Part shown: piece after piece, positions 1 through 11,280 of the stretch
Layout of the letters: each line of letters begins with the position of its first letter
Numbering within the stretch: the stretch's first letter is position 1
Assembly: GCA_002794465.1 (NCBI GenBank)
Contig: MTSL01000053.1
Coordinates: 1-11,314, forward strand
DNA from: Paramicrosporidium saccamoebae KSL3
Lineage: Eukaryota; Fungi; Cryptomycota
Length of the DNA stretch: 11,314 nucleotides
Direction: 5' to 3'
Notes under the pieces: generated by a model
Seen by the model: the letters and a program-made list of their open reading frames with translations, nothing else
Database searches by the model: none
What the model was told of the DNA's origin: nothing
Made by a program: the position numbers and the translations under genes

Positions 1-2823
1 TGGAACATTGAAACCTTGCGTAGGAGGAGCATTGAAATTCTGTGTCGGCGGGGCATTGAAACCCTGCGTTGGAGGGACATTGAAATTCTGAATTGGGGGA
101 ACACCAAATCCTTGTCCTTGCACATGTCCGGGATGTCTTCCGGGAAGCGACGTCTGTTGGGGCTCTGCAGTCTTGAGATTCTCCGGAGCCACATCCACGG
201 CCAAAGTTTGATAAAGTTGTGGTACTGGTCTGATGGGAATATTCATTGTCCGTGTAGCCTGACAGAGACGATCTCCGAATACACTCACCAGATCCGATTC
301 TCCGTTCAACTCGCGCGCATTGCTGAACGAGTTAAAGTACCTTACGGCCACATCCAACAAGCCATTGTTGGCCATAACATATGCATATTCGATAAATTTA
401 TCAGAAATCTCCGGAATGCTCTCCTGGATTGGGGTAGCCTCTTGTGGTGCCAAATATCCAGACACTTGTTCCAGGATTCTCGTCTTTTCGATCAATGATT
501 CAAGCCACAGACCGTATTCCATTGAATTCCGCTCAGGAGCGTTTCGGATGGTCCCGGAGAATACAAGGGAAATGGCTCTGGCAGCATCGCCCGCTGCCAT
601 GTGGCAGATTAGGGCAGGAGTGATGAATTGAGGATTAGTTGCTATGGCAGCCTCCAACCGACCCCCTAGGATGCTGCAGAGTTGGGTAAAGGTAGCTCCT
701 TTGGCATATGAGCAAATGAGAGCCATGATTTCTTCCCAATTGTCCACCAAGGCGTGCTGCACAACATCACTCAAGTCCTTTTTGACAATTCCAGAAACGA
801 GACGGAGATACGGGAAACGGGCCTTTTGGAAGTATATCTGCTGCGTCTTGGCAACCAAAGCATCCCCTCCACAAATCGCCACCAAAAGAGCATCAGAGAG
901 ACGGTCGGCCTTGACACAAAGATCAACGGCTGCCTCAAAATTGCCCAAGATGATAGCACGGGTGATGGTCCGGTCAATCTCGCTGCATTCGGGCCCAAAC
1001 AGTGCAAACGGAACTCCTTGGAACGTACTGCGTCTTTTCAATCCCTCCCCAGAAGAAGAGTGGATCGCCGTCTCTTCTGCGGGTGCCTCTTCAGCGTTCT
1101 GAACAAGCGATTGGAAATCAAACTGATCGCCGCTTTCGGGACTACCAGCTGTACCGAAAAAATCATCAAACTTGCCGCCATCATCAGGCGCATTAAAGGC
1201 CGGCGGGGAGGAGTCAGTGGTTGATGTGTGCACAGGAGCGGGCTTGTGGGCCGATTCTTCTGCCAGTGTAAGCACACGCAACTTCTCGGCAAGCTGTTGC
1301 TGATCGAATCCCAGCAAATTCATAAGCTTTTCTTGGGGATTCGACTCGAACATGACCTTAGCGACGTTCCAGAAAACCGCCTCGCTATCAGACACATGAA
1401 GATTGGGGATTGCAGAAGGAATCTTTTCAGCGCAGTACTCGACCAGCATCTGATTGCTTAGTGCAGCATCGAGTTTGGCTGATTCACTGACAAGCTTCTC
1501 ATTCGTCCCCACATTCACAATGGTGACAATGCGTCCCGAAGCATCTCCCCGGAGCGACGAAAAAGAGACAAGACGCCCTCCAAACGCAAATGAAATACCA
1601 ATGGGACGACGGAGCCATTTTGGGATTTGCACATGAGTAGGTGCGGGTGCTCTTTGGGCCATTCCTGAGGAGGCCATGGCAAAGAAATCCTCAGCATTTG
1701 AGGATTGTGGGGCAGGCCGTCCTCCACCGGACATGAGTTGCTGGAACGAATTGACCTCAACCATGCCTGAGAACGATGCAGTGGAGAAAAGATCGGGGTT
1801 GCGAGGACACCACTGAACATCAAAGAGCCAATTGTCGCTGTGAGTCAGCTCGGCAATCACAGTGCCAGACTTGGGATTCCAACAAATAGACTTGTTGTCT
1901 TTTCCACAGCTCAATAATAATTCGGCATCCTTGGGACACCATGCCATGGACAAAATTCCCTTGGTATGTCCAGTCAGGGTCTACATTGTGAATTCCACAC
2001 AACAAATTACCTTTTCGGGAGCACGGGCATTGCGGAGATCCCACGACATGATAATGGGGTTCTGATCGTCATCAGATGCAACCAGAATCTGGGTTGCATT
2101 TTCGGGATTCCATGCAATGGCAGACATGCCAAACCGTTGTCCGGGAGCTGACAGCTGAAGCACCTCCTTGCGACTCTTCAAGTCCCACACCGAGGTGAAT
2201 CCAGAATTGGATGCCGTAGCCAAAATATGTGGGACTATTCTATTCCAGGCCAAATCAGTAATATCCTCAAGTTTTGAGCTCTTCGTGGCCGAAGGAGAAT
2301 ATGGCTGGCTGAGATTATTCAAATCCCAAAGCCAAATCTAGTAATTAGTGACACTTTGTGATATCCCTACTTCAGAGTCTGTCGCACCAGAAGCTACCAG
2401 AAAAGGTTGGAATGGATTGACTTGAAGACCACGGACTGCTCCATGGTGCGCCTCACAACGGGCAATCAATGCACTTTCGTTGTTGGGCGTCTTGAGCAGG
2501 TCAGCGACATTCCAAAATGACAATGTTCCATCCTCACATCCACCAATAATTACTCCATCTGTTGAGGTGCTATTATGTGCACTCCATGCCAACCGATTGA
2601 ACCGCGATGGCGCTGAGAGGGTCGTCCGCTGTACCACCTCTCCCGTGCTTTTATCATCCAAATTCAGTTCATGGATTTCCAACTCGGCCAGTGTGCTGAA
2701 GGAAGCGTCGAGAGCGCCCGCCAATGTGCCAGTGGCAAGCAATGGCGAGGTAATTTGTGGCGGGCTCCAGGCGACGGCTGCCGTGCGTTTAACCTCTTTC
2801 AATGACATTCGGCTTGGGACCAT
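1..2823 (-). CDS. SEC31: COPII outer coat protein Sec31, 3'-truncated by the window edge; exons 2823-2371, 2337-2011, 1980-<1
   Basis: The N-terminus M..SLKEVKRTAAVAWSP and the WD40 segments FNRLAW, VRGLQVNPFQPFLVASG, IWLWDLNN, GHTKGILSMAWCPKDAELLLSCGKDN and WLFDVQWCPRNPDLFSTASF are Sec31-like. PKWLRRPIGISFAFGGRLV is the Sec31 hallmark, followed by the alpha-solenoid (ITRAIILGNFEAAVDLC) and the start of the Pro-rich region. Removing two GT-AG introns joins all frames. Exon 3 (660 codons) is open to position 1, which is why the ORF track omits it. The start could instead be the second ATG (MSLKEVKR, 2808). Confidence 0.96.
6..101 (-). repeat. Coding 24-nt tandem repeat (4 units, may continue past the window edge) encoding PP-[IT]-Q-[NG]-FN-[VA] in the Sec31 Pro-rich region
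   Basis: CATTGAAA recurs at 6, 30, 54 and 78. Units alternate between ..AACC(T/C)TGCG and ..AATTCTG, giving a 48-nt higher-order period. The minus-strand translation is VPPIQNFNVPPTQGFNAPPTQNFNAPPTQGFNVP. Confidence 0.92.
1981..2010 (-). other. Spliceosomal intron 2 of SEC31 (30 nt, phase 0)
   Basis: Minus-strand sequence GTAATTTGTTGTGTGGAATTCACAATGTAG; removal joins PEK to TLTGHTKGILS, the conserved WD40 GH motif. Confidence 0.93.
2338..2370 (-). other. Spliceosomal intron 1 of SEC31 (33 nt, phase 0)
   Basis: Minus-strand sequence GTAGGGATATCACAAAGTGTCACTAATTACTAG with a CTAAT branch point; removal joins ATDSE to IWLWDLNN. Confidence 0.93.
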
Positions 2824-2925
2824 GCGCCGCGTTAATTATGAGGAAAACAACAATTCTTTTGTTTTTTCATGGAAGTGTGATTGGTTGGAGACTGGTTAAG
2901 TTGAGTGAATAGGCTCAGATGGGGG
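2824..2925. promoter_or_regulatory. Probable bidirectional promoter between SEC31 and the isoprenoid-synthase-like gene, with a CCAAT box
   Basis: Only 102 nt separate the two divergent ATGs. The spacer has an AT-rich tract (about 2832-2870) and TGATTGGTT (2878-2886), which is AACCAATCA on the minus strand, an NF-Y/Hap2-3-5 type site. Confidence 0.55.
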
Positions 2926-4284
2926 ATGATAAACGAAACGAAAGGGGCCAACTATTCTACGGACAACTTGAGCAAAAGATTTGAAGAATTGGGAAGGGTT
3001 GCTCGACCAACAGAAGACTTTAATGAGATTCTGGAGGAAGCCAGAAAGGCTGCGGTGGATTGGATGTCCACATCGGATACGCTAGCAAAAGAGCCTGTAT
3101 ACAGCAGTAACGATCAGTTTCACAATGATCACGATCTTGAACAGGTGAGAAATCTGGCCAGACAAGTGATGCACAAGAAGGGGATAGGAAGAATGGAGCG
3201 AGTTTTCCATGAGCCGGGATTAACAGGGAAGGCTGCTCGATACTTGGGAGTTGGCGTCATGTGGTTGGCATTGAACCGGTGGTCTCATGTCTTTTTGAAA
3301 AGATCGAATCAGAGGCTGGTTGATGCGCAGAAATGGCTGAGTCTCTGTCTGCAATTCGAGTCCGCCTTGAAGCGCTTCTCGGGGTGGCTTTCAAGAGTGT
3401 ATCCTAGTTGCAGTCTTAAGGAGAGGATAAAGGCTATTAGGATGCTGTGGACTGCGACATTTCTCGCTGCCCTATATGGTCGTTTTGAAAACATTAATGA
3501 TACCTCCTTGTTCGCCTGTGCCCTGCTCTATCCACTTGTTGATGATTACCTGGATACTGAAACCAATGATTTGTATCGACAGGACTTTGCGGCCAAGCTA
3601 AAGTCCAAAGTCACATTTAGCAAACCTTCAGGATCCGACTGGTCATCGCCGCACCCCAACTCCAAGCTTGTTGGCGAGTTGGTTGAGCAGGTGATGCAGC
3701 GCTTTATGCTGTCCAGTTCTAATAGACAATTGGCCATCAGTTTGCTGTACTCGCTGATAGATCTGGAGCTGAAGAAGGTCCCAAAAGACTTACTATTTTC
3801 CACCACTTGCAAGGGCGGGTTCACTCTTTGTCTTTTACACATGATGATTGTCGACTCTATTGATATGCACAATATTCAAGTTCTACTTCGCCTCGGCCTT
3901 TCCCTGCAGATGGTGGATGACTTGCAAGATATTCATGAAGACTTGGGCGAAATGACCAATACGTTGGCTACGGATCATGTTTACTCAAGTCCGGATCTCC
4001 GACGACAATTCGCCAGGACAATCAATTTCATCAGATATCGAATATTCACAGGTCTCTATAGGAGACATAAGATTCCCTTTGAAGATGGCCTTAAGATTGT
4101 ATTTACTGAATCACTGGTCTTGCTCTGCATGGAAGCAGCAGTAAATACCCTTTCCCTGCTTTCCCCCGACATTGCTTCCCTCACGCAGCACTGTCAGCTG
4201 TCATCTGCGTTTCTGAAGAAACATCCAATCGAGTTGTCGCTTCATCGAGTCACTAGCCTAATTGTCGCTTCATCGGATCACTAG
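2926..4284 (+). CDS. Uncharacterised class I isoprenoid synthase / terpene synthase-fold protein (about 452 aa, intronless)
   Basis: Long uninterrupted ORF. It contains LLYPLVDDYLD (DDxxD, 3541-3555), TCKGG (K at 3811) and LGLSLQMVDDLQDIHED (second DDxxD, 3916-3930, in the GLxxQxxDDxxD context of trans-prenyltransferases). The first in-frame ATG is 2926; the track's GTG start at 2905 is unlikely in a eukaryote, and an alternative ATG lies at 3064. The fold call rests on motifs only and the substrate is unknown. Confidence 0.72.
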   Translation: MINETKGANYSTDNLSKRFEELGRVARPTEDFNEILEEARKAAVDWMSTSDTLAKEPVYSSNDQFHNDHDLEQVRNLARQVMHKKGIGRMERVFHEPGLTGKAARYLGVGVMWLALNRWSHVFLKRSNQRLVDAQKWLSLCLQFESALKRFSGWLSRVYPSCSLKERIKAIRMLWTATFLAALYGRFENINDTSLFACALLYPLVDDYLDTETNDLYRQDFAAKLKSKVTFSKPSGSDWSSPHPNSKLVGELVEQVMQRFMLSSSNRQLAISLLYSLIDLELKKVPKDLLFSTTCKGGFTLCLLHMMIVDSIDMHNIQVLLRLGLSLQMVDDLQDIHEDLGEMTNTLATDHVYSSPDLRRQFARTINFIRYRIFTGLYRRHKIPFEDGLKIVFTESLVLLCMEAAVNTLSLLSPDIASLTQHCQLSSAFLKKHPIELSLHRVTSLIVASSDH

Positions 4285-4540
4285 TTGAATTGTCGCGTCA
4301 TCGAAACACTAGTAAAATTATCGCTCCATGTAATAAATAGTCGAATTATCGTTTAATGTAACTACTAGTCAAAGCATCGTTTCATCGAGTTAGCAGTCAA
4401 ATTGCCCATCAAGTTGTAGTCAGATCGCCCATCAAGTTAGTAGTCAAATCGCTAATCAAGTCACTAGCCAAATCACTAATCAAGTCACTAGCCAAATCAC
4501 TAATCAAGCCAGTAATCATGCCAGCAATCAAGTCATTAGT
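4234..4540 (+). repeat. Degenerate minisatellite of about 12-14 units whose period shifts from 28 to 24 to 12 nt; overlaps the last codons and stop of the upstream CDS
   Basis: 28-mers start at 4234, 4262, 4290 and 4318 (e.g. TTGTCGCTTCATCGAGTCACTAGCCTAA), with degenerate units at 4346 and 4376. 23-24-mers start at 4402, 4425, 4449 and 4473 (TC(G/A)CTAATCAAGTCACTAGCCAAA). 12-mers of the TAATCAAGCCAG type run to about 4540. Confidence 0.9.
4332..4337 (+). terminator. Candidate poly(A) signal AATAAA for the 2926-4284 gene, inside repeat unit 4
   Basis: AATAAA lies 47 nt after the TAG stop. Confidence 0.45.
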
Positions 4541-8528: not shown

Positions 8529-9119
8529 CTACTGTGGCTTGTGACGAAGAGCAAATGCCCTGACTTGCTCCTCATACTTTTTCCTGTTTTCCCTGCAACC
8601 GGTTAATATACAACACTCCTGTACCTAAACATGCAGTACATTTCGTGGTTGGCGGGACTCTTCAGGTTGGTTTCGTCAAGGAGCTGTTGAATGCCAACGA
8701 GCAGCTGTCTCAACGTAATGGCCGGTTTCCAGCCATCACCCAGTAGCGACAGACAAACGTATCCCGAGGGGAAAATGTTGGGGTGGGGGATGGGTGGGGT
8801 GAATTGGCCTACAAATTAATGGAGAATCATAATGTGTACATTTGGGCGCCGTGCTAGGATAAGTGTCACTGAACATGACCCTCAGCTTATAGACGCCCCC
8901 TTCCCAAATGCTCTACAAGGTGAGACACGTCCAATAGGTACATTCGCCTTTCCCGGAATACCACATTCCCAGATAAGCATATTCATAGACCCGTCTGCGT
9001 TTGTCATTGGTTTTGCGTAAAAACCCTACCATGAATACCACCACCAGACAGCGTACAAAGGGATGGTCCTTCCTCCATTGTTTTCGCTCCTCTGTTAGTC
9101 TTGTTACCGCAATACTCAT
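8529..9119 (-). CDS. UBC9: SUMO-conjugating enzyme Ubc9 (155 aa); exons 9119-9057, 9025-8942, 8912-8840, 8808-8625, 8592-8529
   Basis: Spliced translation: [169 protein letters not shown] and WECGIPGK are Ubc9-specific, and HPN plus the catalytic Cys are present. Confidence 0.96.
8593..8624 (-). other. UBC9 intron 4 (32 nt)
   Basis: GTACAGGAGTGTTGTATATTAACCGGTTGCAG; removal restores [14 protein letters not shown]. Confidence 0.9.
8809..8839 (-). other. UBC9 intron 3 (31 nt)
   Basis: GTACACATTATGATTCTCCATTAATTTGTAG; removal restores APKC-QFTPP. Confidence 0.92.
8913..8941 (-). other. UBC9 intron 2 (29 nt)
   Basis: GTACCTATTGGACGTGTCTCACCTTGTAG; removal restores IPGKAN-SIWEGG. Confidence 0.92.
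9026..9056 (-). other. UBC9 intron 1 (31 nt)
   Basis: GTACGCTGTCTGGTGGTGGTATTCATGGTAG; removal restores DHPF-GFYAKP. Confidence 0.93.
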
Positions 9120-9148: not shown

Positions 9149-9331
9149 TTAATCAATGATACGTGTCCACTCTACGCCCAAAGAACGGTAGTAAGCGTCG
9201 CGGTGCGCCTTTCGGGGAAGTTCGTAGAAGCGCGACCAGCATTCGGCCCCGATGATGCCCAAGCCAAAGGCGATAGTCATGTGCTTGTAGAACCAGCGGC
9301 GAGCAGAGCCTTCAATTACAGGTGCGACCAT
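9149..9331 (-). CDS. COX9: Cytochrome c oxidase subunit Cox9 (fungal subunit VIIa / animal COX6C homologue), 60 aa
   Basis: MVAPVIEGSARR..IAFGLGIIGAECW..Y..PR...RDAYY follows the fungal Cox9 pattern (AP.I.G..RR; one TM helix with GLG; W; R..FY/YY). The size fits, and the stop is followed directly by AATAAA. Confidence 0.8.
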   Translation of the reverse strand: MVAPVIEGSARRWFYKHMTIAFGLGIIGAECWSRFYELPRKAHRDAYYRSLGVEWTRIID

Positions 9332-9838: not shown

Positions 9839-11280
9839 CTACTGGGACTCGACTTTGGTAGCCGCGGCTTCACGCTTCGACTTGAGATTATTCTTTTCGT
9901 CCAAACGCTTTTGGCGAGAATGCTGCATCTTCTGGTATAGCTTCTGACGCTTCTTACTGAGCATGGACACGGCCAATTCTTTCTGTACTTTTTGCATCTT
10001 TTTCTTCTTTGCAGGCTTGGTGACAATCGGTGCATCAGCAGTGACTGCTTCGGCTGTTTCATCCTCAGATTCGTCAGTGAGATCATCTTCTTCAGTAGAG
10101 GTGAAGGGAGACAGATGAGGGGGGAGGGTGGCACCAAGGCGGTAGTCAGTCATGTCCACCAAAGATGCAGTATTGAGAGAGTCGAATACCCATTGTGGTT
10201 GGAGATATTCGCGTTCAACAAACATTTTGCTCAGAAAGGGACGATCGACGATTTGATGAGTGAGAGAAGGATCGTCTTCTTGGATGGGGCAGGTTCCATC
10301 TTCCTGAGAAAAAGACGCAGTCGCGCCCAGACACTGCAGTACAAAGCACAAGGCCTTGCGAGGCACTTCACGAGACACGAAAATCTTCTTTCCGGACAAA
10401 AGCCGATGGTCACCGTCGGGGAAGATTTCATCAGGGAGAGAGATTTCTGGGAAGGATGACGAAAAGACTACCTCTTGGCCCTCTTCGATAAACTGACTAG
10501 GATACTCCCAGCCGAGACGTGTAAAAAGACGATAGTTGACAAAACGCATCAGTGTCATGTAAAATTCCAAAAATGTAAGCATCACCTTAAAGTCGACATC
10601 AACAGGAACTGGGGTGGTAAACTCGTGAGGAACAACCCAAGTGACTTGCTGTCCCAAGATTTCTGCCTGATAGTAAATTCCCTTGATAGAAATGAACGCC
10701 TTCTTGAGCGAGTCAGTGGCAACAACATAGGATTCGAATTCACGCAGCAACTTTGCGCATTTAAGCGACGTGTCTGCTTGGTGCGAGTCCACATTTGTGC
10801 GGGGCAGAGTGGCAAACAGGGCCAACATGGAAAGTGGGTCATCCAAATCCCTCAGAGCATCCACAAACGACGGATACCGTTCTCTCACCAAGTGATCCAA
10901 CTTGATCACCGGCTTCGTGTTCTTCTCCAACGACTTAATCTTGGCCCACTCGCCCTTTCCCATATATTTGCGGATGCGTCGGTGGAACGATTTTAGCTCA
11001 CGGAACTTTTGCAGGAGCGGCTCGTGGGAAAGAAACTGGATATCCTTGAGGAGATACACAGTTTTCTTGTTGGTTGCGGTGCTGCCGATTTTGTTCTTGT
11101 GCTTGGGGTCGCGGGGATAGATACCCTTCAAGATGCACAGACGACGAAAGTCGCTGAGAGAAAGCTGCAGCTTCTTAATGGCACGGGCTCGTGTAACATA
11201 TTCGACTGCCACACCTTCTTGTCCCTATGAGATGATGAGATACAGTTGGAGGCATATACCTTTTTCTTCAACTTGGTCAT
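9839..11280 (-). CDS. NOP7: Pescadillo/Nop7, 60S biogenesis factor of the PeBoW/Nop7 complex (468 aa); exons 11280-11260 and 11224-9839
   Basis: YVTRARAIKKLQLSLSDFRRLCILKGIYPRDP, YPSFVDALRDLDDPLSML, FISIKGIYYQAEI, the BRCT region QPQWVFDSLN and LPPHLSPF are pescadillo motifs. Splicing the 35-nt intron yields the typical basic N-terminus MTKLKKK-GQEG, in frame with the track ORF. TAG is followed directly by AATAAA (9838-9833). Confidence 0.96.
11225..11259 (-). other. NOP7 intron (35 nt, phase 0)
   Basis: GTATATGCCTCCAACTGTATCTCATCATCTCATAG. Confidence 0.9.

Follow-up and report, generated by a model that had tools for sequence, protein, structure and literature searches.

The intranuclear amoeba parasite Paramicrosporidium saccamoebae KSL3 carries an uncharacterised variant within the class I terpenoid-synthase superfamily, and this variant has an unusual spread over bacteria and eukaryotes. 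The gene lies at 2926..4284 on the forward strand of an 11,314-nucleotide (nt) stretch of contig MTSL01000053.1, which is called the window here. It is a single-exon coding sequence reading from the ATG at 2926 to the TAG at 4284, and both the list of open reading frames (ORFs) and an independent translation give a product of 452 amino acids (aa), P0001. The host is a rozellomycotan (Rozellomycota), for which about 3,750 protein models have been reported (PMC5701793). P0001 is read here as a functional class I-fold enzyme of the "class 1 isoprenoid biosynthesis" family, which acts in prenyl-diphosphate chemistry and is an ancient resident of its genome. As a whole this statement is considered reasonably probable; the fold, the family membership and the ancient residency, taken without the chemistry, are held with high confidence.

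Two Asp-rich motifs, both on the forward strand like all features of the gene, lie at the centre of this reading. Motif 1, LLYPLVDDYLD (residues 200-210; 3523..3555), stands at the C-terminal end of helix 193-211, with about 200 residues ahead of it. Its Y202, D206 (codon starting at nt 3541) and D210 are invariant in an alignment of 141 sequences. At position 207 most family members have N and P. saccamoebae has D, the family norm being D-N-x-x-D and the DDxxD form being peculiar to the P. saccamoebae subclade. Motif 2, GLSLQMVDDLQDIHED (residues 324-339; 3895..3942), stands at the C-terminal end of helix 314-334 and contains DDLQDIHED (D331-D339). Here Q328, D331, D332, D335 and D339 are invariant, and the codon of D331, in LQMVDDLQDIHED, begins at nt 3916, 125 codons after that of D206. 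The remaining two of the ten invariant residues are basic. K296 opens a K296-G297-G298 motif (3811..3819) on helix 289-309, which precedes D331 by 35 residues and whose first G is at least 90% conserved. R172 (3439..3441), the Arg of a (Q/K)AxR(N)xW motif 34 residues before motif 1, is, judging by its conservation, a candidate diphosphate-binding residue. Motif 1 is followed by DDYLDTETNDLYRQDF, which has no Arg-Arg (RR) pair and only the single R218 (3577..3579), a basic residue eight positions past D210 that stands where chain-elongating synthases have their RR loop. It is a conserved R in the close clade and a K in the bacterial members, where the invariant K174 of the bacterial alignment aligns with it. 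An earlier note on this DNA had claimed the motif positions, their 125-codon gap, the KGG 35 residues before D331, the missing RR and the roughly 200 residues before motif 1, all of which were confirmed by translation.

The persistence of these residues is set against very low overall similarity. Outside the clade of P0001, the 141 homologues share only 14-23% identity with it, and the catalytic-looking residues are also kept in rozellid orthologues of only 20-29% identity. In nearly all of the 165 members examined, [ML]LYP[YL]xD[ND]xxD and QxxDDxQDxxxD recur about 132 residues apart. Because of this invariance in 141 divergent homologues and the recurring spacing in 165 members, the motif pair together with R172 and K296 is well beyond chance.

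As modelled, P0001 has the class I terpenoid-synthase fold. A first AlphaFold model, from an alignment of eight sequences, was moderate, with a predicted local distance difference test score (pLDDT) of 77, and a second one (AF2), from the 141-sequence alignment, reached a pLDDT of 89.8 and a predicted template modelling score (pTM) of 0.90. Searched with Foldseek against the PDB, both models retrieved only enzymes of the class I terpenoid-synthase fold, at probabilities of 0.9-1.0: CrtM, the class IB enzyme BalTS (5yo8), isoprene synthase, squalene synthase, Sat1646, bacterial terpene cyclases, farnesyl diphosphate synthase (FPPS) and octaprenyl diphosphate synthase (OPPS). In the model, motifs 1 and 2 end helices 193-211 and 314-334, four helices apart, as helices D to H of the class I fold do. 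The all-alpha, terpenoid-synthase-type bundle that defines the superfamily Isoprenoid_Biosyn_C1 is thus found both in the model and in the Foldseek matches. The class I isoprenoid-synthase fold proposed in the earlier note agrees with these matches, every one of which has that fold, and with weak profile matches that align the second motif.

At the sequence level, the nearest known enzymes are the trans-isoprenyl diphosphate synthases (PF00348; FPPS/IspA, geranylgeranyl diphosphate synthase (GGPPS) and the OPPS 3tc1), which have the same fold. When P0001, eight close homologues and 40 bacterial homologues were compared with Pfam and NCBIfam, only sub-threshold matches to polyprenyl_synt and SQS_PSY were obtained, and polyprenyl_synt (PF00348) was the only recurrent sub-threshold Pfam family. 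It gave no match to P0001 at E <= 0.1 and sub-threshold matches in four of the eight close homologues; the best E-values were 0.016 among these eight and 4.6e-4 among the 40 bacterial proteins, all below the 27-bit cut-off. Profiles of the family matched 3tc1 (E = 1.6e-4), IspA and GGPPS at the second Asp-rich motif (SARM), weakly but consistently, and hidden Markov model alignments placed motif 2 on the FQxxDDxxD SARM of trans-prenyl diphosphate synthases and on the second motif of CrtM. Like the trans-isoprenyl diphosphate synthases, P0001 has a second motif of the form Gly-x3-Gln-x2-DDxxD-x3-D, a Lys on the helix before it and a distance of about 125-130 residues between its two Asp-rich motifs. 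The earlier note had suggested an enzyme derived from isoprenyl diphosphate synthases, which fits the weak second-motif matches to these enzymes, although such matches fall short of proof.

P0001 might be an ordinary chain-elongating trans-prenyl diphosphate synthase, namely an orthologue of FPPS, GGPPS or Coq1 whose sequence has changed rapidly in a parasite. Such an origin would account for its nearest sequence relatives among solved structures and Pfam, for a DDxxD that occurs twice, for an LQxxDDxxD context like FQxxDDxxD and for a K-G-G at the K-T position. This explanation is very improbable, as all matches lie below curated thresholds and are limited to the second-motif region. P0001 lacks three features of these synthases (an RR following motif 1, GKRxR at the N-terminus and a GK following the SARM), has KGG in place of KT and about 100 extra N-terminal residues, and belongs by full-length homology to a separate family of about 400 aa whose motif 1 is mostly DNxxD. 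RR, GKRxR and the GK after the second motif are the ligands of isopentenyl diphosphate (IPP) and diphosphate in chain-elongating synthases. Since these IPP-binding basic motifs are absent, P0001 is not taken for a standard IPP-condensing synthase of farnesyl, geranylgeranyl or polyprenyl diphosphate, and a reaction of the terpene-synthase type, or the prenylation of an acceptor, is more probable than the elongation of a chain. On the same grounds (sub-gathering scores and the absence of RR, KT, GKRxR and GK) the class of PF00348 was ruled out, and the earlier statement that this is not an ordinary FPPS, GGPPS or Coq1 holds.

The other class I families were also compared one by one. A canonical class I terpene cyclase (PF03936 / PF19086) was rejected, with no Pfam match and weak structural matches only. 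Relative to the canonical cyclase triad (N/D)Dxx(S/T)xxxE, D331, D335 and D339 occupy positions 1, 5 and 9, so that the spacing fits while the residues differ. The head-to-head synthases (CrtM and squalene synthase; PF00494) gave the lowest Foldseek E-value (CrtM 3vjd, 1.8e-3) and a weak profile match to CrtM (E = 0.07), in which the family stretch LGLaLQvvDDLqDlqED was aligned with LGESLQLINILRDVGED of CrtM. However, their matches are sub-threshold only (SQS_PSY PF00494 in one of the eight close homologues, E = 0.053), the N and R positions of SQS_PSY are D and Q in P0001, and the template modelling (TM) score is <=0.51. The squalene/phytoene synthase family, with its DxxED and NxxRDxxxD-type motifs, was ruled out because of these sub-threshold matches.

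According to Fujihashi et al. (2018, PMC5939612), the class IB large-terpene synthases (BalTS 5yo8/6loo and Bacillus subtilis YtpB) are marked by DYLDNLxD as their first motif and DY(F,L,W)IDxxED as their second. Like P0001, they are non-canonical class I enzymes that are invisible to standard terpene-synthase models, and they share the second-motif pattern D-x3-D-x2-E-D. They also gave the best TM scores (0.52-0.53, with a root-mean-square deviation of 6.5 A over about 345 columns). In contrast to them, P0001 has no DYLDNLxD, is about 100 residues longer, and shows 10% identity in the structural alignment with no detectable sequence similarity. Membership of class IB was ruled out on motifs, the first being absent and the second present only as D-x3-D-x2-ED. 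Classes ID, IE and IF have predicted class I-like structures, unrecognisable sequences and stand-alone genes; homologues have been reported in bacteria, fungi and protists, and the reported examples are all actinomycete proteins (Abe et al., 2024, PMC11234867). The family of P0001 is a discovery of this kind too. Compared by published motifs only, P0001 does not agree with class ID, which is marked by D(N/D), ND and RxxKD (PMC11234867), and no actinomycete label occurs among the 80 bacterial loci listed for the P0001 family.

The family to which P0001 belongs is large and mostly bacterial. A word-indexed protein search returned only seven relatives, of 38-54% identity, whereas an exhaustive profile search yielded representatives of 766 clusters with E <= 1e-3, of which 268 reached E <= 1e-10. 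Another word-indexed search, made with a rozellid profile, brought no addition within the limits of the word index. One of these clusters holds WP_055666583.1 of Desnuesiella massiliensis, which bears the NCBI name "class 1 isoprenoid biosynthesis enzyme". Aligned with hhalign, the rozellid and bacterial profiles matched over 369 columns (residues 38 to 435) with a probability of 99.9% and E = 4.4e-34. Full-length profile homology thus goes together with the signature Y-P-x2-D-[ND]-x2-D ... K-G-G ... Q-x2-DD-x-QD-x3-D, and the bacterial family with which the earlier note had compared the pattern proved to be real and homologous.

The N-terminal part of the protein belongs to this homology. It forms a helical region (about residues 38-160; 3037..3405) with helices at 30-47, 61-85, 99-123 and 134-158 in the model, a near-invariant W46 (conserved in >=90% of the 141-sequence alignment) and a P-x-Y-x(3)-Q-x(2)-N-D stretch. 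Since the hhalign match to the bacterial profile sets in at residue 38-39, the region is part of the shared family domain and not the lineage-specific extension described earlier. The bacterial "class 1 isoprenoid biosynthesis enzyme" proteins are of the same length class (about 400 aa) and agree with P0001 in the N-terminal region, the motif spacing and the invariant R, Y, K and Q. They differ from it by the low identity given above, by DNxxD against the DDxxD of the rozellid clade, by K against R218, by RNVW against RxLW, and by KGGxSVLAD against KGG(F/L)TL.

At least 576 matches were confirmed in bacterial contigs, with one genome per species. The 80 listed bacterial loci include Clostridia (Clostridium, Acetobacterium, Tissierellales and Clostridioides difficile), Anaerolineae, Acidobacteriota, Aminicenantes, KSB1, Bacteroidales and Thermotogae, and these hosts, judged from the taxon names, look like mostly anaerobes. 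Some distant members have export signals at the N-terminus: in P0017 a twin-arginine translocation (TAT)-like signal (Pfam TAT_signal, E = 0.021) precedes a Cys, and P0061 and P0063 combine Sec-like hydrophobic N-termini with about 250-300 residues of extension.

Within the lineage of Paramicrosporidium, the gene is of long standing and has been passed on vertically as part of a conserved block of housekeeping genes. By ORFs and Pfam, the gene order in the window is Sec31-like WD40, target, protein kinase, ZIP transporter, isocitrate dehydrogenase (IDH) and Pescadillo. At least 13 Paramicrosporidium-like genomes carry the gene, and all eight whose surroundings were examined keep it in or beside the same block of Sec31-like, target, kinase, ZIP and IDH (Iso_dh) genes. 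The comparison covered the contigs of seven relatives, four with target identities of 38-46% (P0004, P0006, P0007 and P0008) and three with 20-29% (P0009, P0012 and P0013). The Sec31-like gene is head-to-head with the target in six of the seven (L001-L005 and L086). On every contig that extends far enough, the target is followed by the kinase, ZIP and Iso_dh genes. L087, the contig of P0012, has the same block with an ABC-transporter gene inserted between the Sec31-like gene and the target, together with a peptidase gene. In this one divergent rozellid lineage, an ABC transporter and an M1 aminopeptidase flank the target (L087 5310-9174 and 10826-13228; L088; L089), and the inserted transporter consists of ABC_membrane and ABC_tran, twice.

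Selection and composition were examined as well. Between the close relatives L001 and L002, the ratio of non-synonymous to synonymous substitution rates (dN/dS) is 0.08 for the target, a sign of strong purifying selection, and 0.13-0.14 for the kinase, ZIP and Pescadillo genes. The GC content at third codon positions (GC3) of the target, 0.52, matches that of its neighbours, as does its overall GC content, and the genomes of the relatives range from 44% to 66% GC. Taken together, the synteny, the dN/dS and the persistence of the residues indicate that the gene was present in the ancestor of the whole Paramicrosporidium-like clade and is strongly constrained. The gene had been called an orphan, a description that the orthologues, the conserved block and the low dN/dS contradict. 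A scan of JGI metagenomes added only distant relatives (21-28% identity) besides the contig of P0051 (L100), and no further rozellid loci. The genome paper contains no terpenoid, isoprenoid, sterol or mevalonate terms and no passage on horizontal transfer of the target gene (PMC5701793).

A recent horizontal gene transfer from bacteria, or bacterial contamination of the assembly, would be in keeping with a family carried by hundreds of bacterial species and very few named eukaryotes, and with a published assembly that needed cleaning of bacterial reads (PMC5701793). Either is scarcely credible, since eukaryotic housekeeping genes flank the gene on a single contig, this arrangement is found in at least seven other related genomes with target identities down to 25%, GC and GC3 equal those of the neighbours, and the rozellid sequences cluster together in a bootstrapped neighbour-joining tree. 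Both were rejected on synteny and composition. In that tree (200 replicates) the rozellid subclades received 90% and 100% support, all rozellids with P0051 received 87.5%, and all 19 eukaryote-like sequences were grouped at 60%.

How the lineage came by the gene is a separate question. The family might be ancestral in eukaryotes, or old in a wide eukaryotic group, with many losses, a view that concerns origin only and is compatible with the proposed function. P0123, on a 28-kb eukaryotic contig with ZPR1, OGG1, RasGEF, ORC4 and DNA ligase genes, a context unrelated to the rozellid block, speaks for it. Four more homologues (P0016, P0027, P0045 and P0059) are on transcript-sized contigs, and the 3' regions of the P0016 and P0059 contigs are non-coding, of low complexity and eukaryotic in look. 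The single group of 19 eukaryote-like sequences points the same way, but its 60% support is low and long-branch attraction is possible. Furthermore, no named eukaryote beyond P. saccamoebae occurs among the 8 and 11 proteins listed by the name-carrying searches, and bacterial diversity is far greater. Ancestry in eukaryotes is therefore regarded as possible but rather unlikely. Given the far greater bacterial diversity of the family, a bacterial origin is plausible as the simpler reading, and a single old eukaryotic acquisition fits as well as a rozellid-specific one. A transfer from bacteria is suggested by the distribution only, and it would predate the diversification of the Paramicrosporidium-like clade. 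The horizontal transfer suggested in the earlier note thus survives as a plausible ancient event, while the old residency, the lack of a compositional signal and a search of IMG/VR viral contigs, in which no relative of P0001 was found, lend it nothing further; in the neighbour-joining tree, the other eukaryote-like sequences tended to group with the rozellids.

For the vertically inherited, class I-fold protein described above, the most likely role, by analogy, is the Mg2+-dependent ionisation of a prenyl diphosphate, by an enzyme that would form a new subclass. The mechanism is proposed by analogy with every characterised enzyme of the class I fold. D206-x3-D210 and D331-D332-x2-D335-x3-D339, on two helix ends, would hold a Mg2+ cluster, which would clamp the diphosphate of an isoprenyl diphosphate, and the invariant R172 and K296 may assist binding and activation of the leaving group. 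Ionisation would yield an allylic carbocation. This could be quenched in a hydrophobic pocket by cyclisation or elimination, as in terpene synthases, or be captured by an acceptor, as in prenyltransferases. More specifically, but only tentatively, P0001 may represent a new subclass of class I terpenoid-synthase-type enzymes, with the signature Y-P-x2-D-N/D-x2-D, K-G-G and Q-x2-DDxQD-x3-D; such enzymes would either form a terpenoid not yet described or act on a polyprenyl diphosphate in a novel manner. The new terpenoid pathway mentioned in the earlier note is a hypothesis of this kind.

Several observations weigh against the reading as a whole. No curated Pfam or NCBIfam model matches P0001, and the literature, searched by the NCBI family name and by motif strings, holds no characterisation of the family. 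The Foldseek matches are distant (TM scores of 0.43-0.53 and E >= 1.8e-3, the lowest E-value being that of CrtM 3vjd), and since they are so weak, the assignment is made at the superfamily level only, outside all structurally characterised families. Clustering of the neighbouring genes, first for 67 bacterial loci and then for 139, revealed no recurrent partner and no isoprenoid gene; the commonest neighbour family, ABC exporters, occurs in eight of the 139 loci, followed by extracytoplasmic function (ECF) sigma factors, PspC, outer-membrane beta-barrel, ROK and enolase-superfamily proteins. Most members have DNxxD instead of the canonical DDxxD as motif 1. Some distant members carry export signals, a poor fit to a cytoplasmic prenyl-diphosphate substrate, and these few may keep a non-canonical substrate in play.

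The fold could indeed have been kept without any isoprenoid action, either for another phosphorylated ligand or in a non-catalytic or assembly factor of the kind of NDUFAF6, a squalene/phytoene-synthase-like assembly factor for complex I. The missing isoprenoid gene linkage, the export signals and the non-canonical motif 1 would all suit such a role, as would the hosts among the 80 listed loci, which seem to be mostly anaerobes; many such anaerobes make few terpenoids. On the other side, the ten residues, which are polar or acidic and placed as in Mg2+/diphosphate sites, do not vary at all among the aligned bacterial and eukaryotic sequences. Such invariance is typical of catalysis and not of scaffolding, and the dN/dS of 0.08 speaks in the same sense. 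A non-isoprenoid role is accordingly judged unlikely, with a weight that is not negligible, and we infer that P0001 acts on an isoprenoid substrate by Mg2+/diphosphate chemistry.

The window around the gene is densely packed with genes. A spacer of about 100 bp (2824..2925), presumed to be a bidirectional promoter, separates the target ATG at 2926 from the Sec31-like WD40 ORF, which starts at 2823 on the reverse strand and is divergent to the target. Seven related loci have this head-to-head layout. This Sec31-like gene consists of ORFs 2338-2823 and 1981-2322 (reverse strand) and looks broken between them by a very short intron or a frame change. Gaps of roughly 10-60 nt occur at or near the same break in the relatives, and the ORF of the gene runs past the left end of the window. 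On the other side of the target, a degenerate minisatellite covers 4229-4539, with 28-nt units followed by 24/12-nt units and 74-92% matches. It begins within the last 18 or so codons of the target ORF and occupies most of the 430-bp spacer up to the kinase gene, so that repeats encode part of the protein's C-terminal tail (…LSLHRVTSLIVASSDH).

Farther downstream, the IDH gene is an NAD-type isocitrate/isopropylmalate dehydrogenase gene, and the Pescadillo gene (9839-11212, reverse strand) encodes a product 100% identical to the P. saccamoebae protein named Pescadillo-like. The seemingly empty spacer between the two holds a 60-aa ORF (9149-9331, reverse strand) whose weak match to cytochrome c oxidase subunit VIc (PF02937) has an E-value of 0.006 and stays below the curated cut-off, and 60-aa genes were also called at the equivalent position in the related loci L001 and L002. 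At about 8736-9119, on the reverse strand, three short ORFs, one of them with WECGIPGK, are arranged like successive exons split by short introns; they presumably represent a Ubc9-type E2 conjugating enzyme, the pieces being too short for Pfam.

Several non-canonical terpene synthase classes (IB to IF) were found recently by the same signal, that is, a class I-like structure with an unrecognisable sequence. The P0001 family, which counts hundreds of members and is uncharacterised both in curated models and in biochemistry, is therefore a ready candidate for another such class. Its distribution, over many seemingly anaerobic bacteria, the rozellid clade and a few protists, also makes it a clean test case for ancient inter-domain gene sharing. 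For the organism, the strict conservation in extremely reduced intranuclear parasites, the dN/dS below that of the flanking housekeeping genes and the fixed syntenic place suggest that the product matters. If the tentative reading as a new subclass is true, the subclass would be common to hundreds of mostly anaerobic bacteria and to a eukaryotic group that includes the Paramicrosporidium-related intranuclear parasites of amoebae, and the parasite's need of the product would explain why the gene was retained in a genome cut down to about 3,750 genes.

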